Below are positions 36,378 to 46,684 of a stretch of DNA of 64,000 nucleotides, piece after piece. The notes below the pieces were generated by a model that saw nothing but the letters and a program-made list of their open reading frames with translations, was not told the origin of the DNA and made no database searches. The stretch is from Pseudomonas aeruginosa PAO1 (GTDB taxonomy: Bacteria > Pseudomonadota > Gammaproteobacteria > Pseudomonadales > Pseudomonadaceae): assembly GCF_000006765.1 (NCBI RefSeq), contig NC_002516.2. One strand, 5' to 3'. The stretch's first letter is position 1, and each line of letters opens with the position of its first letter. A program made the translations under genes and the position numbers.

Positions 36378-37184
36378 TCAGTCGAGGATTTCCACCGGCA
36401 TCCCCACCTCCAGGCTGCCCTGTCCCAGCGCAATCAGGTTCTGCCCGAACAGCACCGCGCCATCCTTTTCCCGGTAGGTCTTCAGGGTCGTCAGCGGCTC
36501 GCGGTCCTCGTTGCGCTCGCCGGTCGCCGGATCCAGGGTGGTGAGGATGCAGCGGGAACAGGGCTTGGCCACGACGAACTCGACCGAGCCGATGCGGATG
36601 CGTTTCCAGCCGTCCTCGGCGAACGCGGCGCTGCCTTCCACCACCAGGTTGGGACGGAAGCGCAGCATCTCCAACGGCCGGCCGACCCGCTGGCTGAGGT
36701 CGTCGAGCGAAGCCTGGCCGATCAGCAGCAGCGGGAAACCGTCGGCGAAATGCACCTTCTGCCCCGGTTCGGCGTAGCCGGTATCGACCTGCCGCGCGCG
36801 CGCCTCGGGAATGTGCACCAGGCGCGTCGGGCGGCCGAGGAAGCGCGTCAGCCAGTCCGCTGCGGCGTCGCCGGCATCCGGCGCCTGCAAGGTATCGCGC
36901 CAGACCGTGACGCCACGCAGGTTGGCGTCGGCTGCCGGTACTTCGAGGCTCAGCTCGGACATCCCCGGCGCATTCAGCCGCAGGACCTCCGGCGCCGCCC
37001 AGCGCGCCTGGATACGCCCCAGCTGCGGCAGCAGGCGCTGGGTGAAGAAACGTCCGGTTTCGGTGTCCACCGCCATCCAGCGTCGGTCGCCGACCACGCC
37101 CAGCGCATCGAGCGCGACACGCTCCAGGGACTCGGCGGCGGAAGACTTGATCGGATAGCGGTACAGCGCGGAGAGACGGAACAT
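36378..37184 (-). CDS. MOSC domain protein (YcbX/mARC-like)
   Basis: 268 aa. LYRYPIKS, GDRRWM, FADGFP, RFRPNLVV, KPCSRC. Confidence 0.9.
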   Translation of the reverse strand: MFRLSALYRYPIKSSAAESLERVALDALGVVGDRRWMAVDTETGRFFTQRLLPQLGRIQARWAAPEVLRLNAPGMSELSLEVPAADANLRGVTVWRDTLQAPDAGDAAADWLTRFLGRPTRLVHIPEARARQVDTGYAEPGQKVHFADGFPLLLIGQASLDDLSQRVGRPLEMLRFRPNLVVEGSAAFAEDGWKRIRIGSVEFVVAKPCSRCILTTLDPATGERNEDREPLTTLKTYREKDGAVLFGQNLIALGQGSLEVGMPVEILD

Positions 37185-37286
37185 GGAACCAGCATCCTTG
37201 GTGGAAAGATGCTGTTATACGGTGTCGCGGGAAAGGCCGACAAGACACAGACGCCACTCCAGGCAGCGGATCAGTCGGCCCCGCCC

Positions 37287-38195
37287 TCAGTCCTCGCGCG
37301 GCGGCTCGCGCAACAACGGCGAGCCGGCCGGCAAGTGCACGCGCAGCGCGCCCGGGGAAACCGAGAAACGCAGCTTGCGTCCTTCCAGCGGCTCGCCGTC
37401 GAGATTGACGTCGAGACCTTCCGCCGCCTCCACTTCCAGCCATGGCACCCGCGCGCGGACGAACAGGCTTTCCACTCCGTTGCCACCGCCGAGCAGGGTG
37501 CCCAGGGTACCGACCATGTCCTGCGGCGTCGGCAGGATGCTCACGTCCAGCAGGCCGTCGTCCACTCGCGCTTGCGGACACAGTACGTGCCCGCCGCCGG
37601 CCTGGCGCCCGTTACCGATGCCCAGGGCGAGGAACTCGCCTTCCCACTGGAAGTCCGGGGCGCTGAAACGGCCCTGGGCGGCATGCACTTCGGAAAAACG
37701 GGTCAACCCGGTCAACAGGTAGGCGGCACCGCCGAGAACCTTCTTCAGGTCCTCCGAGGTATTCGCGGTGACCTTCGAACCGAAGCCGCCAGTGGCCATG
37801 TTGAGGAACAGCTTGCCGTTCACCTCGCCCAGGTCGATCGGCCGCGCCGTCTGGTCGAGCAGCGCCAGCGCCGCGGCCGGTTCCAGGGGAATCCCGGCGG
37901 CGCGGGCGAAATCGTTGGCGGTGCCCAGCGGCAGGATCGCCAGGCTCGCCTCGCCTCGCCCGCGCGCCAGCGCTTCGGCCACCTCGCGCAGCGTGCCGTC
38001 GCCACCGCCCGCGACCAGCGTCGCATAGCCGGCCGCCAGCGCCTCCTCGACGATGCGCCGGGCGTCGCCGTCCTCCCAGGTTACCCGCACCGCCAGCTCC
38101 CGCCCGGCCTCGCGCTGTGCCGCGACCGCGGCACGAACCTCTTCGTTGCCCGCCTGCTTGCCGTGCAGGACCAGCAGAACCTTGTCCTTGTCCAT
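37287..38195 (-). CDS. yegS: Lipid kinase YegS (DAGK family)
   Basis: 302 aa from MDKDKVLLVLHGK. AGGGDGT, LPLGTANDFA, IGNGRQAGGG. Confidence 0.9.
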   Translation of the reverse strand: MDKDKVLLVLHGKQAGNEEVRAAVAAQREAGRELAVRVTWEDGDARRIVEEALAAGYATLVAGGGDGTLREVAEALARGRGEASLAILPLGTANDFARAAGIPLEPAAALALLDQTARPIDLGEVNGKLFLNMATGGFGSKVTANTSEDLKKVLGGAAYLLTGLTRFSEVHAAQGRFSAPDFQWEGEFLALGIGNGRQAGGGHVLCPQARVDDGLLDVSILPTPQDMVGTLGTLLGGGNGVESLFVRARVPWLEVEAAEGLDVNLDGEPLEGRKLRFSVSPGALRVHLPAGSPLLREPPRED

Positions 38196-38269
38196 CGAAC
38201 CGAACCCCTCGTCGTGGCCTTGTCTTTGCCTATTGACCGCGTATCCGGGACGGAAGTGCGGCGCCCGGT

Positions 38270-39829
38270 TCAGGCAGGGTAGCCGGTAATCTCGCGAATG
38301 CTGCGGTAGAGCGGGCGCAACTGGCGATACATGCGCAGGTAAACCTCGCCATAGAGCCGCTGGTAGATCTGCCGGGCTTCCGCCTGGGGCAGGAAAACCC
38401 GGCCGACGCGGGTCATCCCGGCCACCGCGCTGGCGACGTCCGGATAGAGGCCGAGCCCCACCGCGCAGTCGATCGCCGCACCCAGGCCGGACGCCTCGTA
38501 GACATGCGGGCGCTCGGCCGGCAGGCCGAAGATGTCGGCGGTGAGCTGCATCGCCGCGTCGCTCTGCGAGCCGCCGCCGGCCACGCGCAGGCGCACGATC
38601 GGCGTGCCCGAACGCTTCTCGATGCGCTCCTTGCCCTGGCGCAGGGCATAGGCCAGGCCCTCGAGGATGGCCCGGTAGATGTGCGCCCGGGTATGCACGT
38701 CGCCGAAACCGATCATCGCCCCCTTGGCCTCCAGTCCCGGTTCGCGGATTCCCGGCGACCAGTAGGGTTGCAGGGTCAGGCCCATCGAGCCGGGCGGCAC
38801 GCCGTTGACCAGTTCGTCGAACAGTTGCTCCGGCTCGACCCCCTGCTCGCGCGCCTGCTGCATCTCGCGCAAGCCGAACTCGCGCTTGAACCAGCTGACC
38901 ATCCAGTAGCCGCGATAGATCATCACCTCGGTATTGAAATGATCGGGAATCGCCGCCGGATAGGGTGGAATCAGCGGCACGGTTTCCAGGTAGCGGGCGC
39001 GAGTGGTGTTGATGGTCGCCGTGGTGCCATAGGAGAGGCAGGCGATGGTGGGCTCCAGCGCACCTGCGCCGAGCACCTCGCAGGCCTTGTCGGCCCCCGC
39101 GGCGATCAACGGCAGGCCTTGCGGAATGCCGGTGTGCCGGCTGGCCTCGGCGCTGATCTCGCCGAGCCGCTCGCCCGGCTTGAACAGCTCCGGCAACTGC
39201 TCGCGGCGTACCGCCAGCGCCTGCCATTTCCAGTCGCGCGGCGCGGCCCAGCGCAGGCGCTTGTAGTCGAACGGCAGGTAGGCAACGCAGCACCCCACCG
39301 AGTCGACGAAACGGCCGGTCAGGCGGTGGCTGAGAAAGCCGGAAAGCAGCAACACCTTGTCGGTCTTCGCAGCGATCTCCGGCTGCTCCTGGGCCACCCA
39401 GTTGACCTCGGCCTGGGCGCGGAAATGCTCCACCGCGCCCTCGGCGCCGACCAGCTTGAACAGCCAGCCCCAAGGCCCCCTGATGCGCTCGCGGACCTCC
39501 GCCCGGCGCTGGTCGAGCCAGAGGATCGCCGGACGCAACGGCCTGCCCTCGGCATCGACGTGGATCACCGTGCCACGCTGGGTGGTCAGCGACACCCCGC
39601 GGATGAGCCCGCGATCGATGTCCACCTGGTCCCAGAGCCGCCGACAGGCCTCGCCGAGCATCGCCCAGTAGTACTCGGGGTCCTGTTCGGCCCAGCCCGG
39701 ATGCTTCGAGTAGTAGGCCTCCAGCTCCACCTTGCCCTTGCCCAGCAGGTTGCCCTGCAGGTCGAACAGCAGGGCGCGCACGCTCTGGGTGCCATTGTCG
39801 ATCGCCAGCAGATAGTTCTTGTCGTTCAT
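38270..39829 (-). CDS. FGGY-family carbohydrate/polyol kinase
   Basis: 519 aa. AIDNGTQSVRA, EQDPEYYW, ILWLDQRR, AGGGSQSD. Confidence 0.9.
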   Translation of the reverse strand: MNDKNYLLAIDNGTQSVRALLFDLQGNLLGKGKVELEAYYSKHPGWAEQDPEYYWAMLGEACRRLWDQVDIDRGLIRGVSLTTQRGTVIHVDAEGRPLRPAILWLDQRRAEVRERIRGPWGWLFKLVGAEGAVEHFRAQAEVNWVAQEQPEIAAKTDKVLLLSGFLSHRLTGRFVDSVGCCVAYLPFDYKRLRWAAPRDWKWQALAVRREQLPELFKPGERLGEISAEASRHTGIPQGLPLIAAGADKACEVLGAGALEPTIACLSYGTTATINTTRARYLETVPLIPPYPAAIPDHFNTEVMIYRGYWMVSWFKREFGLREMQQAREQGVEPEQLFDELVNGVPPGSMGLTLQPYWSPGIREPGLEAKGAMIGFGDVHTRAHIYRAILEGLAYALRQGKERIEKRSGTPIVRLRVAGGGSQSDAAMQLTADIFGLPAERPHVYEASGLGAAIDCAVGLGLYPDVASAVAGMTRVGRVFLPQAEARQIYQRLYGEVYLRMYRQLRPLYRSIREITGYPA

Positions 39830-39849
39830 CTCGTTCTCGTCTCGGCTGG

Positions 39850-41430
39850 TCAGACGGGCAGGCTGTAGTGCCGGCGCCAGAGGTCCAGATAGGCCTGTTG
39901 CTCACGTTCCCAGCGCGGGTCGTCCCAGCCCAGGCGCGCTTGGCAGAGCGCGCGGATACGCGGCAGGTATGCCGCGCCGCCTCCGGGCAACAGCAGGCCG
40001 AGGCGGGTGCGGCGCAACAGCAGGTCATCGAGATGCAGCACCATTTCCGCCTCGGCGGCGAACGCCAGTTCGGCCCAGAGCGTTTCGCTGGCACCCACGC
40101 AGTCCGTTCCGAGGGTGTCCACCAGCCGCTTGAGGCGGACCAGGTCGCGTCCGTAGCGACCGGCCAGGCGGCGTCGCTGGCCGCTGCCGAGCCCGTCGAT
40201 GAGCGGGCCTTCGCAGGCGCCGAACACCGCCGCGCCATCGTCCGTGACCGTGCGCCCGAGCAGCGGCGCGCAGGCTTGTAGCACCTCCACCGCCAGCGGC
40301 CGGAAGGTGGTCAGCTTGCCGCCGGCCAGGGTCACGCAGCCCGGCTCGCGCCAGAGCACATGCTCGCGTTTCTCGTCGGAAGGCTTGCCGCTGTCGTCGC
40401 CGCTGCTGACCACCGGTCGCACGCCGGCCCAGGTCGACAGCACGTCGCGCGCCTCGATGGCAGCGGCGGGAAACTGCTGGGCGCAGGCCGCCAGCAGGTA
40501 GTCGAGTTCGGCGCGGCTGATCCGCGCGTCCTCCCCAAGGCCGTCGCGATGGTCGAGATCGGTGGTGCCGACCACCGTCGCGCCCTCCCAGGGGAACACG
40601 AACACCGGTCGCCGGTCCGTGGCGTGCATGAAGCTGAAGGCATGGGCCACCGGCAGGCGCCAGGCCGGCAGCAATAGATGGCTGCCGCGCAGCGGGCGGA
40701 TGTGCTCGCTTCCGCCGGGCTGGCGCAACTCATCGGCCCAGGCCCCGGTGGCCAGCGCCAGGGCGCGGCAGCGAAAGTCGAAAAGCTCGCCGCTCTCGCG
40801 GTCCTCGGCGCGCAGGCCGACCACCTGGCCGCCCTCGCGCAGCAATTCGCGCACACGCATGCCGTTGAATGCCTCGCCGCCGTCGTGACGCGCCTCGGCC
40901 AGCACCCGCAGCACCAGGCGCGCATCGTCGGTCACCGCATCGAAGAATCGCGTGCCGCCGAGCAGCCGTTGTTCCTTCAGGCCCGGCGCCAGGTAGCGCA
41001 ACGCGGCGGCGTCGTAGAAACGGTGGTTGCGCCGCCCGGCAAGGGCGTCGTACACGCTCAGCAGGCCGCCGAATAGCCGCGGGCCGGGAAAGCCGCCGCG
41101 GTAGTGGGCCATCACGAAGCTCAACGGCTCCACCAGCCCAGGCGCCTCGCCGAGCAGGCGCTGGCGCTCGCGCACCGAGTCGCGGGTCAGCCGCCACTGG
41201 CCCTTGGCGATGTAGCGCAGGCCGCCATGGACCATCTTCGACGAGCGGCTCGAGGTGCCCCAGGCGAAGTCCCGCTGCTCCAGCAGCAGGCAGCGCCAGC
41301 CGCGCCGCGCGGCTTCGCGGAGGATGCCGGCACCGCTGATGCCGCCGCCGACCACGATCAGGTCCCACTCCTGCCCCGCCAGCGCCGGCAGGCGGCGGCG
41401 ACGCCACTCCTCGTTCCAGGCTGAAGTCAT
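39850..41430 (-). CDS. FAD-dependent glycerol-3-phosphate dehydrogenase/oxidase-like protein
   Basis: 526 aa from MTSAWNEEW. VVGGGISGAG, GTSSRSSKMVHGGLRY, WAGVRP, GGKLTTFR. Confidence 0.9.
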   Translation of the reverse strand: MTSAWNEEWRRRRLPALAGQEWDLIVVGGGISGAGILREAARRGWRCLLLEQRDFAWGTSSRSSKMVHGGLRYIAKGQWRLTRDSVRERQRLLGEAPGLVEPLSFVMAHYRGGFPGPRLFGGLLSVYDALAGRRNHRFYDAAALRYLAPGLKEQRLLGGTRFFDAVTDDARLVLRVLAEARHDGGEAFNGMRVRELLREGGQVVGLRAEDRESGELFDFRCRALALATGAWADELRQPGGSEHIRPLRGSHLLLPAWRLPVAHAFSFMHATDRRPVFVFPWEGATVVGTTDLDHRDGLGEDARISRAELDYLLAACAQQFPAAAIEARDVLSTWAGVRPVVSSGDDSGKPSDEKREHVLWREPGCVTLAGGKLTTFRPLAVEVLQACAPLLGRTVTDDGAAVFGACEGPLIDGLGSGQRRRLAGRYGRDLVRLKRLVDTLGTDCVGASETLWAELAFAAEAEMVLHLDDLLLRRTRLGLLLPGGGAAYLPRIRALCQARLGWDDPRWEREQQAYLDLWRRHYSLPV

Positions 41431-41435
41431 TCCGC

Positions 41436-43031
41436 TCAGTCCTGCAGCAGGGTGCCGCGGTTGAGCCGCCCGGCCGGGTCGAAGTGACCGGCCATGGCAC
41501 GCAGCGCGGCGACGCCCAGTTCGCCCTTCTCGCGGGGCAGGTAGGGTGCGTGGTCCTTGCCGACGCCATGCTGGTGGCTGATGGTGCCACGATTGTCGAC
41601 GATCGCCTGGCTGGCCGCATGCTTGAGACGCTTCCAGCGCTCCAGCGTCGCCGCATAGCTCGCGGCCGGACGGAACACGTAGGTGGTATAGATGCTCGAC
41701 CCCTCGCCATAGACATGCGAGAGGTGGGTGAACACATGGACTTTCTCGCCCTCGGCGGCCAGGCCGTCTCGCAGGCTGGCCTCGATCTTCTGCAGCAGGC
41801 CGTCGACGTTGCTCCAGTCGGTGGCGGTCTCCAGGGTGTCCACGGCGTAGCCCGCCTGCCACAGGGCCTCGCGCAGGTAGGGGAAGCGGAAGCGGTTCTG
41901 CGCCCACTTGCGCCCCAGCAGGGTGCCGGTGAAGACCCCGCCGAAGCGTTTCAGCAAGGCCTTCGCCTGGCTCAGCGACAATCCGTTCTGCCGGCGGTTG
42001 CCGGTCACGCCGAAGGTCAGCATGCACTTGCCCTCGCCCGCGCCGCGCAGCGCCAGGTATTTCTCCAGCCAGGCGATCTGTCCGGGATGGCCGGCCAGGG
42101 CCAGTTGGGTCATGGTTTCCACGGCGTTGGACAGTCGCAGCATCGACAGCGGCACGCGCGCCTGGGCCAGCTCGCGGGTGGCTTGCAGGGCCTGCTGCCA
42201 GTTCGGCAGGAAGACGCTGTAGAAGCGCTCGTCCTCGGCCAGCGGCGAGACCCGCACCTTCACCGAGGAAATGATCCCGAAGCGTCCCTCAGAGCCCAGC
42301 ACCAGTTCGCGCAGGTCCGGTCCCGCCGCGGATGCCGGGAAGGTAGCGATTTCAAGCGGCCCGGCGAAGGTCTCCAGGGTCCCGCCGGCGAAAAGTTGTT
42401 CGATCCGCCCGTAGCGCAGCGACTGCTGGCCACTGGAGCGGCTGGCGACCCAGCCACCGAGGGTCGACAACTCCCAGGACTGCGGGAAATGCCCGAGCGT
42501 GTAGCCCAGCGCACGCAACTGGCTCTCCACCTGCGGGCCGGCGGCGCCGGGGCCGAAGGTCGCGACCAGGCTCTCGCGGTCCAGATCGATCAGGCGGTTC
42601 ATGCGCTCCAGCGAGACCGTCAGTACCGGCCGCCGCGAGGCTTGCGGATTGATATGGCCGGCCACGGAAGTACCGCCGCCATAGGGAATCAGTTGCAGGT
42701 CGCGGGAGTCGGCCAGGGCCAGCAACTCGCGGATCTGCTCGGCGGTTTCCGGATAGGCCACGGCGTCCGGGTAGACGCCGAAGTCACCCTCGCGCATCGC
42801 CAGCCAGTCCGGCAGGCTCTGCCCGCGGGCATGCAGCAGACGCTCACGGGGGTCGATGCTGTAGCGCGGATCGGCCTCCAGGCGCGACGCCGGGACCTTC
42901 GCCAGCGCCGCCTCCAGGCTGGCGTCCGGCAAGCGTGCGCCCTGCCCGACCAGTTCCGCCAGGAACCCACGGGCGCTGTCCGGCAATTCGACCACGGTGC
43001 TTTCTTCGCCCCAGCCATTCCAACGACGCAT
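41436..43031 (-). CDS. FAD-binding oxidoreductase, alkyl-DHAP synthase (AGPS)-like, VAO family
   Basis: 531 aa. PYGGGTSV, GHFPQSWELSTLGGW, GSEGRFGII, DTLETA, TISHQHGVG. Confidence 0.85.
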   Translation of the reverse strand: MRRWNGWGEESTVVELPDSARGFLAELVGQGARLPDASLEAALAKVPASRLEADPRYSIDPRERLLHARGQSLPDWLAMREGDFGVYPDAVAYPETAEQIRELLALADSRDLQLIPYGGGTSVAGHINPQASRRPVLTVSLERMNRLIDLDRESLVATFGPGAAGPQVESQLRALGYTLGHFPQSWELSTLGGWVASRSSGQQSLRYGRIEQLFAGGTLETFAGPLEIATFPASAAGPDLRELVLGSEGRFGIISSVKVRVSPLAEDERFYSVFLPNWQQALQATRELAQARVPLSMLRLSNAVETMTQLALAGHPGQIAWLEKYLALRGAGEGKCMLTFGVTGNRRQNGLSLSQAKALLKRFGGVFTGTLLGRKWAQNRFRFPYLREALWQAGYAVDTLETATDWSNVDGLLQKIEASLRDGLAAEGEKVHVFTHLSHVYGEGSSIYTTYVFRPAASYAATLERWKRLKHAASQAIVDNRGTISHQHGVGKDHAPYLPREKGELGVAALRAMAGHFDPAGRLNRGTLLQD

Positions 43032-43154
43032 GAACCTCTCCCCTCGCTTGTCGCGGCAACCTGTTTATCGGAACCTTTCTGGCTGCCTATACTAGCCAGC
43101 CGCCCTCGCCTGTCACTGTCGGATCGAGACACTCCCTGTGACCGATCAAGACAG

Positions 43155-43170
43155 CCGGCACGCACGCCGG
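43155..43170. promoter_or_regulatory. Palindrome in the divergent intergenic region
   Basis: CCGGC-ACGCAC-GCCGG. The operator role is inferred. Confidence 0.4.
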
Positions 43171-43192
43171 ACGGCCTGTTCCACCCGCCACG

Positions 43193-43203
43193 ACAAGAAC
43201 AAC
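43193..43203 (+). promoter_or_regulatory. A-rich CA motif next to the AraC start
   Basis: ACAAGAACAAC 4 nt before the ATG, with no clear SD. Confidence 0.45.
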
Positions 43204-43207
43204 GACC

Positions 43208-44239
43208 ATGCAGACCCTTGGCTCCACCTCGGTTCCGGCCCTGCTGAAATACCTGCGCCATGCCGAACGGCTCGGCCTGGACATCGCCCCTGCCCTGGCC
43301 GCCGCCGGCCTCCAGGCCGACCAGCTCAACGACAATCGCCAGCGCCTGCCGGGCGAAGCCCACGAGCACCTGCTCGGCTATTTCTGCGAGCATTCCGGCG
43401 ATCCCCTGTTCGGCCTGCATTCGGCGCGTTTCGTCCAGCCCGGCTCCTGGAGCGTGCTCGGCTACATCGCGATGAACTGCGCCACCCTGGGCGAGGCCAT
43501 GAGCCGCATCACGCCCTACGAGAAGCTGGTCGGCGACATGGGCACCAGCCGCATCGAGGCGGCCGGCGGGCAGGTCCGGCTGATCTGGAACTGCCGCCAC
43601 CAGACACCCCTGGTACGGCGCCACATGGTCGAGCACGTCCTGGCTTCCTGGGTCCTCTACGCGCGCTGGATCGCCGACCTGGAAGGTTCGCCGGACGAGG
43701 TCTGGCTGGAACACGACCTGCCGGACGGAACCCGCGTGGAAGACTACGAGACCTTCTTCGGCTGTCCGGTACGCTTCGCCCAACCCTGTTCGGCGCTGCT
43801 GGTACCGCTGGACTACCTGGCGCTGCCGCTGCGCCAGGCCGACGCGACGCTGCTGCGCACTCTGGAGGAACATGCCCTGGCGCTGATGGCCGAGCTGGAC
43901 GATGACGAGCCGCTGCCGCTGCGGGTGAAGAACGCCCTGCGCCAGCTACTCAAGGACGGCCTGCCGCGCAAGGAACGGGTGGCGGAGAAGTTCGGCATGA
44001 CCGTACGCACCCTGCAACGCCACCTGCAGCAAGCCGGCAGCAGCTACCAGCAGACCCTCGACGAACTGCGCCGCGAACTGGCCGAGCACTACCTGCTGCA
44101 TAGCGAGCTGCCGATCCAGGACATCGCCCAGTACCTGGGCTTTACCGAGTCGCGCTCGTTCCATCGCAGTTTCAAGGGTTGGACCGGGCAGACGCCCGGC
44201 GAGTACCGGCAACGGCGCAAGGAGCCGGCGGCGCAATGA
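43208..44239 (+). CDS. AraC-family transcriptional regulator
   Basis: 343 aa. C-terminal double HTH (VAEKFGMTVRTLQRHL; IAQYLGFTESRSFHRSFKGWTG). Confidence 0.93.
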   Translation: MQTLGSTSVPALLKYLRHAERLGLDIAPALAAAGLQADQLNDNRQRLPGEAHEHLLGYFCEHSGDPLFGLHSARFVQPGSWSVLGYIAMNCATLGEAMSRITPYEKLVGDMGTSRIEAAGGQVRLIWNCRHQTPLVRRHMVEHVLASWVLYARWIADLEGSPDEVWLEHDLPDGTRVEDYETFFGCPVRFAQPCSALLVPLDYLALPLRQADATLLRTLEEHALALMAELDDDEPLPLRVKNALRQLLKDGLPRKERVAEKFGMTVRTLQRHLQQAGSSYQQTLDELRRELAEHYLLHSELPIQDIAQYLGFTESRSFHRSFKGWTGQTPGEYRQRRKEPAAQ

Positions 44240-44267: not shown

Positions 44268-45485
44268 TCAATCGAGCAGTTCGCTCAGCGGAATGAACGC
44301 CACGCCCTCGCCTTCCACGAGGGTACGTCCCTCGCGGACCTCCACCAGCCCCTCGGCCCAGGAAGCGCTGCGCAGTACCCCGGAACTCTGGTTCGGATAG
44401 AGCACCGCGCGGCCCTGCTCCAGGCGACCACGCAGGTACTCGCGACGCTGCCCCGCCTTGGTCCAGGCAAAGCCGGCCGGTACCTCCACCCGCAGCGGCG
44501 CGACCTGCGCCACGCCAAGCCGGCGCAGCAGGTAGGGACGCGCCAGCAGGGCGAAGGTGACCAGGGTCGAAGCCGGATTGCCCGGCAGGCCGATCACCGG
44601 GATGCCCTGGAACTGGCCGACGGTCAGCGGCTTGCCGGGTTTTATCGCCAGCTTCCAGAGGGTCAGCTCGCCGGCTTCGCGCAGCGCCATGCCGAGGAAG
44701 TCGGCCTCGCCCACCGATACGCCGCCGGTGGACAGGATCAGGTCCACCCCGGCCAACCCGGCCAGGCGCTCGCGGGTACGTGCCAGGTCGTCGGGAAGGA
44801 TGCCGGCGTCGAGCACGTCGCAGCCCAAGCGTTGCAGCCAATCCTTGAGCAACGGACGGTTGCTGTTGTAGATCTGCCCGGCCTGCAGCGGCTGGCCCGC
44901 CTCGACCAGCTCGTCGCCGGTGGACAGCAGCGCCACCCGCGGCTTGCGTCGCACCTCCAGGGCCGCGTAGCCGAGCGAAGCCGCCAACCCCAGTTCGATG
45001 GAGCGCAGGCGCGTGCCGGCCGGCAGGACCAGGTCGCCCTGGCGGATTTCCTGGCCACGCGGGCGCACATGCTGGCCCACGCGCAACGGCTGGGTGAAGC
45101 GCACGCGGCCATCGTCGAGCGCTTCGGCGTTTTCCTGCATCTCTACCAGATCGGCGCCTTCGGGCAGCGGCGCACCGGTGAAGATCCGCGCACAGGTACC
45201 CGCTTGCAGCGGCTTCGGCGCCTGTCCGGCAAAGATTTTCTGGCTGACCGGCAGTGGCTCGCCGTTCCAGTCGGCGAGGCGCAAGGCGTAGCCGTCCATG
45301 GCGCTGTTCGGCCACGGCGGCAGGTCCAGGCCGGCCAGCAGGTCGACCGCCAGCACGCGGCCGCCAGCCTGCTCCAGGGGCACCTGCTCACACGTATCGA
45401 TAGGCGTTTGCGCGGCCAGTTCGAGGAGCCGTTCCAGCGCCGTCTCGACCGGCATCAGCCCCGGCTGTTCGCAGCAGCCGCTCAC
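44268..45485 (-). CDS. moeA2: Molybdopterin molybdotransferase MoeA (second paralog)
   Basis: 405 aa, GTG start overlapping the moaB stop. NSAMDGYA, RIFTGA, STGDEL, TGGVSVG, GLPGNP. Confidence 0.93.
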   Translation of the reverse strand: MSGCCEQPGLMPVETALERLLELAAQTPIDTCEQVPLEQAGGRVLAVDLLAGLDLPPWPNSAMDGYALRLADWNGEPLPVSQKIFAGQAPKPLQAGTCARIFTGAPLPEGADLVEMQENAEALDDGRVRFTQPLRVGQHVRPRGQEIRQGDLVLPAGTRLRSIELGLAASLGYAALEVRRKPRVALLSTGDELVEAGQPLQAGQIYNSNRPLLKDWLQRLGCDVLDAGILPDDLARTRERLAGLAGVDLILSTGGVSVGEADFLGMALREAGELTLWKLAIKPGKPLTVGQFQGIPVIGLPGNPASTLVTFALLARPYLLRRLGVAQVAPLRVEVPAGFAWTKAGQRREYLRGRLEQGRAVLYPNQSSGVLRSASWAEGLVEVREGRTLVEGEGVAFIPLSELLD

Positions 45486-46021
45486 CCGCGGCTCTCGCAG
45501 GGCGCCGCCTGTTTCAGGTGCGGGACGAAGTTGCACGGGCGATGACGGGCGTCCAGTTGCTCGACGAGGATGCCTTCCCAGGCAGTGCGGCAGGCGTTGG
45601 TGGAGCCCGGCAGGCAGCAGACCAGGGTGCCGTTGGAAAGCCCGGCCAGGGCCCGCGACTGGATGGTGGAGGTACCGATGTCGGCCAGCGAAATCTGCCG
45701 GAACAGCTCGCCGAAGCCGTCCACCTGCTTGTCCAGCAGGCAGGCCACCGCTTCCGGGGTGCTGTCGCGGCCGGTGAAACCGGTGCCGCCGGTGATCAGC
45801 ACGACCTGCACGCTATCCTCGGCGATCCAGGTCGCGACCTGTGCGCGGATCCGGTATAGGTCATCCTTCAGCAGCACGCGAGCGGCCAGGTTGTGCCCGG
45901 CCTCGGTCAGGCGGTCGACGAACAACTGGCCTGAAGTATCGGTTTCCAGGGTACGGGTATCGCTGACGGTCAGGACGGCGATGTTCAACGGCACGAATGC
46001 CGTTTCGGCCTTGTGGCTCAT
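45482..46021 (-). CDS. moaB2: Molybdenum cofactor biosynthesis protein MoaB
   Basis: 179 aa from MSHKAETAF. VLTVSDTR, ITGGTGFTGRDSTPEA, CLPGS. Confidence 0.93.
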   Translation of the reverse strand: MSHKAETAFVPLNIAVLTVSDTRTLETDTSGQLFVDRLTEAGHNLAARVLLKDDLYRIRAQVATWIAEDSVQVVLITGGTGFTGRDSTPEAVACLLDKQVDGFGELFRQISLADIGTSTIQSRALAGLSNGTLVCCLPGSTNACRTAWEGILVEQLDARHRPCNFVPHLKQAAPCESRG

Positions 46022-46087
46022 GGGGTTGGCCCTTGCTTGTGGACGTGATCGCGGTGTTATATCACAGGCCCGACACGGAGACCCCAG

Positions 46088-46684
46088 ATGCCCGATAGCG
46101 CCCTGCCCCCCTGCTCCATCCTTCTCCTGGCGGGAGGCCGCGGCCAGCGCATGGGCGGTCGCGACAAGGGCCTGATCGAGTGGCAGGGCCTGCCCCTGAT
46201 CGCCCACCTGCATCGCCTGGTGCGCCCGCTCACCGATGACCTGATCGTCTCCTGCAACCGCAACCAGGAACGCTATGCGGCCTATGCCGACCGCGTGGTG
46301 AGCGACGACAGCCGAGACTTCCCCGGCCCGCTCGCCGGCATCCGCGCCGGCCTGGCGGTGGCCCGGCATCCCTGGCTGCTGGTGCTGCCCTGCGACGCGC
46401 CGCGCATCGACCGCGCCTTGCTGGAAACCCTGCTGCAGGCCGCCGGCCGCACACCGGCGCGCCCCTGGATGCTGCGCTGCGGCGGCCAGTGGGAACCGCT
46501 GTTCAGCCTGATCCCGACGCACCTGGCCGAAGAGATAGAACACGCCTGGCGCCAGGGCGACCGTAGCCCACGCCACGTCCTGTTGCCGCTTGGCGCGGAG
46601 GCCATCGAGCTGGCCGCGGGCGATCCGCGGCTGGCCAACCTGAACACCCCCGAGCTGTTGGCTAATCACCGCGAACTGAAGTAA
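46088..46684 (+). CDS. mobA: Molybdenum cofactor guanylyltransferase
   Basis: 198 aa. [34 protein letters not shown]. Confidence 0.95.

Follow-up and report, generated by a model that had tools for sequence, protein, structure and literature searches.

We analysed a 64,000-nucleotide (nt) stretch of the Pseudomonas aeruginosa PAO1 genome (contig NC_002516.2), the whole of which is called the window below and within which an original prediction, made from the sequence, had placed a candidate bacterial ether-lipid or alkylglycerol pathway. The locus comprises four minus-strand genes in a row and a divergent gene for an AraC-type protein. Because primer sequences printed by Kotecka et al. 2021 (PMC8151288) were found within the window, the locus corresponds to PA3027, encoding GliR, and PA3026–PA3023. 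The four minus-strand genes encode a relative of alkyl-dihydroxyacetone phosphate (alkyl-DHAP) synthase (AGPS), a flavin adenine dinucleotide (FAD) enzyme resembling the glycerol-3-phosphate dehydrogenase GlpD, a kinase of the FGGY family and YegS, a lipid kinase of the diacylglycerol kinase (DAGK) family (Table 1). The coordinates and the gaps of 5, 20 and 74 nt were verified on the sequence and, together with Pfam and NCBIfam matches, bear out the genes, spacing, gene names and divergent regulator as first described. The AGPS-like, GlpD-like and FGGY genes are referred to as the triad. Overall, comparison of the encoded proteins and of their genomic contexts suggests that the operon specifies a variant of ether-lipid-related metabolism.

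Table 1. Features of the PA3027–PA3023 locus, in positions of the window.
Feature	Position	Strand	Basis or remark
GliR (PA3027), AraC-type activator	43208..44239	+	Pfam Arabinose_bd + HTH_18; NCBIfam GliR equivalog NF050186
Divergent intergenic/promoter region, 176 nt	43032..43207	.	Between PA3027 and PA3026
Promoter-like site upstream of PA3026	43116..43089	-	Consensus scan
PA3026, AGPS-family FAD enzyme, 531 aa	41436..43031	-	Pfam FAD_binding_4 + FAD-oxidase_C; HQH variant of HHH loop
HVYGEGSSIY motif, including Tyr448	41688..41717	-	Translation; aligned to solved AGPS
SHQHGVG motif (S485-G491)	41559..41579	-	Corresponds to AGPS 'HHH loop' His615-617; Gln487 for His616
PA3025, GlpD-like FAD dehydrogenase, 526 aa	39850..41430	-	Pfam DAO + DAO_C; 5 nt past PA3026 stop
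PA3024, FGGY kinase, own subfamily, 519 aa	38270..39829	-	Pfam FGGY_N + FGGY_C; 20-nt gap from PA3025
Gap between PA3024 and yegS, 74 nt	38196..38269	.	No terminator-like hairpin
PA3023, YegS lipid kinase (DAGK family), 302 aa	37287..38195	-	Pfam DAGK_cat + YegS_C
Terminator-like hairpin, 19 nt past yegS stop	37252..37268	-	Consensus scan, pattern match only

According to Pfam, PA3026 contains PF01565 (1e-27) and PF02913 (4e-47). In phmmer searches of the PDB, its best match was the AGPS of Dictyostelium, named ADPS (2uuu; E = 2.9e-66, query residues 60–521), and its second AGPS match was the guinea-pig enzyme (4bby; E = 8.7e-57, near full length). The next family, D-lactate dehydrogenase (D-LDH), matched at E = 2.2e-21 over residues 88–300, corresponding to the FAD domain only. 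The AlphaFold (AF2) model of PA3026, for which 102 homologues were used, had a mean predicted local distance difference test (pLDDT) score of 96.8. When this model was searched with Foldseek, the top 37 matches were all AGPS, with template modelling (TM) scores of 0.82–0.92 (query-normalised maximum, 0.92), as compared with ∼0.72 for D-LDH.

The catalytic residues of AGPS are also retained. In the HMMER alignment, R299 (42137..42135), R387 (41873..41871) and Y448 (41690..41688) of PA3026 align with R352, R447 and Y508 of Dictyostelium ADPS, which are needed for catalysis according to a review of noncanonical flavoenzymes (PMC3509576). Tyr448 aligns as well with Tyr578 of guinea-pig AGPS, and the guinea-pig variant entries Y578F (4bca) and R419H differ exactly at those Tyr and Arg columns. 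The three residues are invariant or nearly so across both alignments of PA3026 homologues. Tyr448 lies in the HVYGEGSSIY motif, whose presence had been noted in the original prediction and which translates from 41717..41688. The AGPS motifs cited there for comparison are real: both solved enzymes read SHHHGVG at the position aligned with SHQHGVG of PA3026, and the guinea-pig enzyme reads QTYDAGACIY opposite HVYGEGSSIY. Further, the WNGWG segment near the N-terminus of PA3026 aligns with both solved AGPS, the N-terminal region of PA3026 being ∼50 residues shorter. On the grounds of sequence, fold and catalytic residues, PA3026 thus groups with AGPS and not with the D-2-hydroxyacid dehydrogenases, the alternative that the original prediction had raised against itself. 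Judged by these criteria, PA3026 is a divergent AGPS-family member, apart from the D-LDH group, with a predicted AGPS-type catalysis. The assignment is not new: PA3026 was already a candidate alkyl-DHAP synthase in PMC8151288 and in database annotations, and several database sources label its orthologues 'alkyldihydroxyacetonephosphate synthase'.

PA3026 departs from the solved enzymes in the HHH loop, which reads His486-Gln487-His488 and so keeps the first and third His. The original prediction had likened this segment to the AGPS motif, leaving the replaced middle His unweighed. It had placed SHQHGVG at 41559–41576, a range that covers HQHGVG only; the Ser codon lies 3 nt further, to 41579. 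The HQH sequence was invariant in 10 aligned triad-linked orthologues, and the distant paralogues were HHH. A search of 1.84 billion cluster representatives yielded 1083 clusters at E <= 1e-30, of which the 150 best were examined. Among the 120 of these that were full length, the loop was HHH in 102 and HQH in nine. As far as these alignments can tell, HQH is a signature of the triad-linked gammaproteobacterial clade, which is new here.

PA3025 most closely resembled GlpD and GlpO in the PDB (E = 1e-57 to 8e-65), and it contains SSKMVHGGLRY, GSH, GTTD, GVRP and GGKLTTFR (GlpD signature, SSKxxHGGxRY and GGKLTTxR). On the model of the GlpD/GlpO structures, we take these motifs to function in substrate binding. 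The protein scored below every NCBIfam GlpD equivalog cut-off (NF008899, 263.5 versus 360; NF009906, 238.6 versus 352), as compared with ∼780–790 for the canonical GlpD proteins of genomes G260 and G278. One canonical glpD match, G278:C1:1437548-1439059, contained a single in-frame TGA. Because the motifs are kept and every curated cut-off is missed, we consider PA3025 to be a GlpD paralogue.

PA3024 likewise fell below every NCBIfam cut-off, the best being XylB (252 versus 380), with 148.5 versus 590 for GlpK (TIGR01311). It was about equidistant from the solved glycerol kinase, LsrK and xylulokinase; the closest named relative found was Escherichia coli YgcE (31% identity, E = 2e-77). Its orthologues, at 51–68% identity, accompany the AGPS-like gene. 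In all five of the sampled triad genomes outside Pseudomonas, a true GlpK (647–728 bits) is encoded elsewhere, and the triad kinases score 127–160 bits against the cut-off of 590. On these scores, the triad FGGY kinase is predicted not to be a glycerol kinase, and the presence of a genuine GlpK in all five genomes weakens the suggestion in PMC8151288 that the operon kinase may be the cell's only glycerol kinase. Finally, PA3023 exceeded the cut-off of the NCBIfam YegS equivalog (TIGR03702, 478.8 bits versus 387) and matched YegS in the PDB (2p1r, E = 2e-73).

We examined the conservation of the locus in a sample of 401 genomes across Pseudomonadota. An orthologue of PA3026 at at least 52% identity was present in 13 genomes, and in each of them the genes run AGPS-like, GlpD-like, FGGY. 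The yegS gene follows the triad only in Pseudomonas-family genomes. Neither the operon nor any of the 13 orthologous loci contains a GNPAT-type acyltransferase or a fatty-acyl reductase as a partner. Four distant AGPS-like genes (30–33% identity) had neither a GlpD nor an FGGY neighbour; a tally of 16 of the 401 genomes includes the unpublished genome G384, which holds one of these four partnerless loci (L014/L029) and enters no other result. In the gammaproteobacterium G260, a gene for a Caa3_CtaG-family membrane protein lies directly 3' of the triad (L022:4892-5734), and in a metagenome-assembled genome (MAG) of the Anaerolineae (Chloroflexota) another lies between the AGPS-like and GlpD-like genes (L066:6999-7889). 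The Caa3_CtaG-family protein could be a membrane partner of the module.

The association between AGPS-like and GlpD-like genes extends well beyond this group. Among the cluster representatives, four distinct clusters at 50% identity consist of proteins of ∼1100 aa in which an AGPS-like part is fused to a GlpD-like part (DAO + DAO_C) in operon order; their named members belong to Fidelibacterota and Calditrichota. We also inspected the loci of 80 homologues of the HHH type, those ranking nearest to PA3026 in a pattern scan of contigs from one genome per species; the loci were annotated by our own open reading frame (ORF) calling and tblastn. A GlpD-like gene occurred within ∼3 kb in 59 loci, an adjacent DAGK/YegS-type gene in 54 and both in 49. 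Both partners were present in all 17 loci of Streptomycetales, 10 of 12 of Mycobacteriales, five of five of Propionibacteriales and five of six of Alphaproteobacteria, and neither in eleven loci of Thermoleophilia. The arrangement varies: the GlpD-like gene is divergent in Actinomycetota, the order is GlpD-DAGK-AGPS in Alphaproteobacteria, a Bacteriovoracaceae MAG has AGPS-GlpD-DAGK with 4-nt overlaps, and one of three Desulfobacterota MAG loci has AGPS-GlpD-FGGY. Overall, adjacency of AGPS-like and GlpD-like genes was observed in Gamma- and Alphaproteobacteria, Desulfobacterota, Actinomycetota (including Mycobacterium), Bdellovibrionota and Chloroflexota. The synteny check proposed with the original prediction thus came out in its favour, the link crossing phyla and including fusions. 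The accompanying kinase alternates, being of the DAGK/YegS type in most phyla, FGGY in the gammaproteobacterial and Desulfobacterota clade, and both in Pseudomonas. Treating yegS as peripheral, as was originally done, does not agree with this pattern. Apparent AGPS+DAGK 'fusions' of 700–890 aa were dropped as spurious 5'-extended ORFs in high-GC DNA, the two parts lying in different frames.

Metagenome contigs gave a similar picture. After a stop-codon check of the adjacency calls, two uninterrupted AGPS-like::GlpD-like fusions were counted, along with 32 back-to-back pairs, several of them followed by a DAGK-type or FGGY gene. Eight further AGPS-like genes (L145, L161, L166, L167, L175, L180, L183 and L186) had a PlsC-type acyltransferase gene immediately upstream, and none of the eight had a GlpD-like neighbour. 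Conversely, all ∼37 GlpD-linked AGPS-like genes were without a PlsC-type acyltransferase; the acyltransferase probe was a single sequence, and this exclusivity is that of one sample, the metagenome. The acyltransferase-linked context, without a GlpD-like gene, resembles the eukaryotic pair of GNPAT and AGPS. One acyltransferase::AGPS fusion was present among the cluster representatives (P0200). The cross-phylum module, with its fusions, its alternation of kinases and its exclusivity with respect to acyltransferase-linked AGPS genes, is new here.

In a quick maximum-likelihood tree, PA3026 fell in an FGGY-linked clade (99% support by the Shimodaira–Hasegawa-like approximate likelihood ratio test, SH-aLRT) beside an alphaproteobacterial DAGK-linked clade, and GlpD linkage was present in several deep branches. 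The outgroup was E. coli YgcU only, and the placement of the bacterial clades relative to eukaryotes is outside the scope of this tree. In two Desulfobacterota MAGs, lipid-related genes lie 5' of the AGPS-like and GlpD-like genes (L035:7052-9911 and L033:5294-8968), one having a GT4 glycosyltransferase, a methyltransferase and a CDP-alcohol phosphatidyltransferase, and the other a YhdP-like protein.

The regulation of the operon has been described in PMC8151288. The AraC-type protein of the window scored 671.8 bits against the NCBIfam GliR equivalog (NF050186; cut-off, 570). Chromatin immunoprecipitation sequencing, electrophoretic mobility shift and reporter data established that GliR binds and activates the PA3026 promoter (PMC8151288), in line with the published link between regulator and operon mentioned in the original prediction. 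According to RNA-seq, GliR overproduction raised PA3026–PA3023 and the phospholipase C gene plcA (PA3464) by >40-fold, and PA3342 mRNA was likewise strongly raised (PMC8151288). We found the partial palindrome published for this promoter near 43154-43169 (PMC8151288). The published GliR 'motif A' consensus had no match at <=1 mismatch within the intergenic region (43032..43207); at the same stringency, the whole window contained 13 matches versus 3.2 expected, most of them intragenic, an excess that may stem from GC-rich codon usage. Two proteomics or microarray papers that name PA3026 or PA3025 held no useful clue on induction.

The consensus scan detected no terminator-like hairpin in the gap between PA3024 and yegS, as first reported. 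RNA-library contigs from four runs span this gap, yet they also extend into neighbouring genes and are therefore uninformative on whether PA3024 and yegS share one transcript. In P. mendocina and P. resinovorans, an additional gene has been noted between the kinase gene and yegS (PMC8151288); one Pseudomonas-family genome of our sample has a 258-aa ORF without a Pfam match at this position (L020:4970-5746). The flanking genes, encoding a MOSC-domain protein on one side (36378-37184) and MoeA- and MoaB-type molybdopterin proteins on the other (44268-46669), are unrelated to the operon.

Taken together, these results lead us to propose, at a little short of even confidence, that PA3026–PA3023 is the Pseudomonas version of a widespread three-step module of a kinase, a GlpD-like enzyme and an AGPS-type enzyme, activated by GliR. 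A kinase, of the DAGK/YegS type, the FGGY type or both, would phosphorylate the sn-3 hydroxyl of a 1-O-substituted (alkyl- or acyl-) glycerol. The GlpD-like FAD enzyme would then oxidise C2 of the resulting 1-O-substituted glycerol-3-phosphate to yield 1-O-substituted DHAP, the C1-O bond of which PA3026 would break or exchange via an AGPS-type flavin-N5 adduct. What the data establish is the gene order and spacing, family membership, conservation of catalytic residues, cross-phylum adjacency and fusion and, from PMC8151288, co-regulation by GliR; the substrates, the order of the steps and the direction are our inference. The AGPS-like and GlpD-like genes are tightly coupled and even fused, which argues that their products catalyse consecutive steps. 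A kinase gene lies beside the pair in about 50 of the 80 genome loci and, because in most phyla it encodes a DAGK-family lipid kinase, a lipid is favoured over a sugar as the substrate. The acyltransferase-linked and GlpD-linked contexts did not overlap in the metagenome sample, and the Myxococcus AGPS operon likewise has fatty-acyl reductase and acyltransferase functions (PMC13012113). This fits the idea that, in GlpD-linked loci, a kinase and a GlpD-like enzyme take the place of the acyltransferase in furnishing 1-O-substituted DHAP to the AGPS-type enzyme.

Sequence cannot decide between cleavage and synthesis of the ether. We lean, with low confidence, towards turnover or use of ether lipids, in which alkyl-DHAP would yield a fatty alcohol and either DHAP or acyl-DHAP, the module being fed by GliR-controlled PlcA. 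In favour of breakdown, the module is self-contained and, of the bonds in a glycerolipid, only the ether bond resists lipases; in addition, the alcohol-addition half-reaction of AGPS is reversible by microscopic reversibility, and GliR co-induces a phospholipase C. In the form that we would put forward most specifically, the GlpD-like flavoenzyme would be a 1-acyl/alkyl-glycerol-3-phosphate dehydrogenase, a new activity, handing its product directly to the AGPS-family enzyme, in an ether-lipid module common to Pseudomonas, Mycobacterium, Streptomyces and many uncultured bacteria; this we hold a shade more tentatively than the three-step module itself.

Several points weigh against this proposal. 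We know of no report of ether lipids in P. aeruginosa, of no precedent for a lipid glycerol-3-phosphate as the substrate of a GlpD-type enzyme, and of no substrates of FGGY kinases other than sugars and polyols that are small and soluble. The conserved gene set of the module lacks an alkyl-DHAP reductase, a fatty-acyl reductase and a lipase. In E. coli, sugar-type transporters accompany YgcE, a related kinase, and YgcU, a distant AGPS-like protein. The neighbourhood counts were drawn from the matches nearest to PA3026, in which related genomes are not independent, and the enzyme functions of all four proteins are predicted ones. Within PA3026, Gln487 replaces His616 of AGPS; since His616 and His617 are treated as active-site residues in an AGPS docking paper, this substitution lies in the active site, and the chemistry of PA3026 may differ from that of AGPS. 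Finally, strains lacking PA3027 or PA3026–PA3024 showed no phenotype on rich medium, with glycerol or citrate, under osmotic stress or in nine Biolog plates (PMC8151288).

The same module might instead run in the synthetic direction, monoacylglycerol or lysophosphatidate being converted to 1-acyl-DHAP by the kinase and the GlpD-like enzyme, and PA3026 swapping the acyl group for a fatty alcohol in the manner of canonical AGPS, such that ether-lipid synthesis could begin with no DHAP acyltransferase. We judge this direction unlikely in absolute terms; it falls within the probability given to the shared step order and is nearly as likely as turnover. It is consistent with the intact AGPS catalytic residues, with the mutual exclusion of acyltransferase-linked and GlpD-linked contexts, with the CDP-alcohol phosphatidyltransferase and glycosyltransferase genes just upstream in a Desulfobacterota MAG and with the status of lysophosphatidate as a universal bacterial intermediate. 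By contrast, no alkyl-DHAP reductase or source of fatty alcohol is conserved in the module, ether lipids are to our general knowledge unreported in Pseudomonas, Streptomyces and Mycobacterium, and the joint induction with phospholipase C looks more like breakdown. A different use of AGPS was put forward in PMC8151288 from database mining, proceeding from glycerol via glycerol-3-phosphate and DHAP to acyl-DHAP, by an unknown acyltransferase, and on to alkyl-DHAP. In this KEGG-based scheme, glycerol kinase activity is assigned to PA3024, PA3025 acts as a second glycerol-3-phosphate dehydrogenase yielding free DHAP, the acyltransferase is unlinked and PA3026 forms alkyl-DHAP. The family names fit and the GlpD motifs are intact. 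Nevertheless, we find the scheme improbable: PA3024 reaches 148 bits against the GlpK cut-off of 590 and resembles LsrK and XylB at least as much as it does GlpK, a true GlpK occurs alongside the triad in each of the five sampled genomes, no acyltransferase is linked although other AGPS-like genes have one, the AGPS-like::GlpD-like fusion points to consecutive steps, and the operon deletion strain grows on glycerol (PMC8151288). The sequence kinase, dehydrogenase, AGPS-like enzyme, as given in the original prediction, fits the comparative pattern better because the published scheme needs the missing acyltransferase; the action of the FGGY kinase on an alkyl- or acyl-glycerol, which was part of the same prediction, is unsupported. 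Overall, the original interpretation is partly supported.

Two further explanations dispense with a lipid substrate. The triad could serve to degrade a soluble polyol or sugar, much as erythritol is catabolised, with the AGPS-like enzyme acting on a ketose phosphate or small hydroxy compound and yegS an unrelated neighbour. Brucella EryA and EryB are an FGGY kinase and a GlpD-like enzyme, every known FGGY substrate is small and soluble, the E. coli ygc cluster groups YgcE and the AGPS-like YgcU with transporters of the major facilitator superfamily (MFS) and a short-chain dehydrogenase, and the triad lacks yegS outside Pseudomonas. We consider this route somewhat more improbable than the published scheme. 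Against it, most phyla have a DAGK-family lipid kinase, not a sugar kinase, next to the AGPS-like and GlpD-like genes, no transporter is conserved beside the triad, a phospholipase C belongs to the GliR regulon, PA3026 has the WNGWG segment and the catalytic set of AGPS, and the Biolog carbon plates gave no phenotype (PMC8151288). It is highly improbable that PA3026 is simply a dehydrogenase of the D-2-hydroxyacid or glycolate type with a resemblance to AGPS. The FAD_binding_4/FAD-oxidase_C architecture is the same and there are weak GlcD-type NCBIfam matches; however, the E-values for AGPS are better by 45 orders of magnitude, with matches along the whole protein, all AGPS entries rank first by fold, GlcD scores 96 bits against a cut-off of 568, and the motif of PA3026 is HQH, as opposed to the Gly-Glu-His of D-LDH/GlcD-type enzymes.

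In animals, a large part of the phospholipids are ether lipids, particularly in phagocytes. To our knowledge, bacterial AGPS homologues outside the myxobacteria have no assigned role, and we found no described bacterial route for breakage of the glyceryl ether bond. If the three-step module is as proposed, it would be the first bacterial pathway to cleave and use the glyceryl ether bond of host lipids, which otherwise resists hydrolysis, or else an acyltransferase-independent aerobic route to bacterial ether lipids, and a GlpD paralogue, a DAGK-type kinase and an FGGY kinase would each gain a new activity. Were host ether lipids processed, the module would represent a nutritional or membrane-remodelling trait common to P. 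aeruginosa and mycobacteria. Even with another substrate, the pairing of AGPS-like and GlpD-like proteins, conserved and in places fused, offers enzymology a clear and inexpensive target, for which the regulator GliR is known and clean deletion strains are available.

Among known systems, PA3026 shares with eukaryotic AGPS/ADPS (EC 2.5.1.26; 2uuu and 4bby) full-length alignment, a fold similarity at TM 0.82–0.92, the FAD domains, WNGWG, the essential Tyr and two Arg, and both outer His residues of the HHH loop. It differs in having ∼25% identity, an N-terminus shorter by ∼50 residues, Gln at the middle His and no peroxisomal context; in its genomic context, a GlpD-like enzyme and kinases stand in place of GNPAT and a fatty-acyl reductase (FAR). 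Myxococcus xanthus Agps (MXAN_1676) is a bacterial AGPS with a role in the formation of alkyl and alkenyl ether lipids (PMC13012113, PMC13159169). It is the only bacterial AGPS with genetic evidence and, likened by description, belongs to the same family as PA3026. The Myxococcus operon contains FAR- and acyltransferase-type genes (PMC13012113), whereas the Pseudomonas-type operon has GlpD-like and kinase genes and no acyltransferase.

The mycobacterial grouping of glpD, flavoprotein and DAG-kinase genes to which the original prediction had pointed was found in loci of Mycobacterium spp. other than M. tuberculosis H37Rv. In one of them (L104), the GlpD-like gene is divergent and the AGPS-like gene is followed by a DAG-kinase gene at a 4-nt overlap. 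The same three families are adjacent in the Mycobacterium loci, the AGPS-like proteins being 37–38% identical to PA3026; unlike in Pseudomonas, the loop is HHH, the GlpD-like gene is divergent, the FGGY kinase is absent and the regulator is another one. A literature search on the Rv2249c (glpD1)-Rv2251-Rv2252 grouping returned nothing functional. E. coli YgcU is a distant AGPS-like protein, 27% identical to PA3026, that keeps HHH and lacks the N-terminal AGPS part; ygcE, whose product is the relative of PA3024 described above, lies 2.5 kb from ygcU. Unlike the PA3026 locus, the ygc cluster has no GlpD-like gene and contains genes resembling those for electron transfer flavoprotein (ETF), MFS transporters and a short-chain dehydrogenase. 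In E. coli K-12 (L113, 2892657-2903374), the cluster includes ETF-like YgcQR, YgcNO, two MFS transporters and a GlpP-like antiterminator.

The proposed first step has a counterpart in animals. The kinase domain of ACAD10 is the 1-O-alkylglycerol kinase of animal ether-lipid salvage, and prokaryotic homologues of this domain phosphorylate chimyl alcohol and co-occur with AGPS (bioRxiv 10.1101/2025.09.10.675409). As in the step that we propose, phosphorylation of a 1-O-alkyl- or 1-O-acyl-glycerol serves as the entry reaction. The ACAD10 kinase differs from the operon kinases in that it has a protein-kinase-like fold, neither DAGK nor FGGY, and feeds synthesis downstream of AGPS rather than an AGPS-type step. 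Because such an activity exists in an unrelated family that includes prokaryotic members, an alkylglycerol entry step for the Pseudomonas module is plausible.

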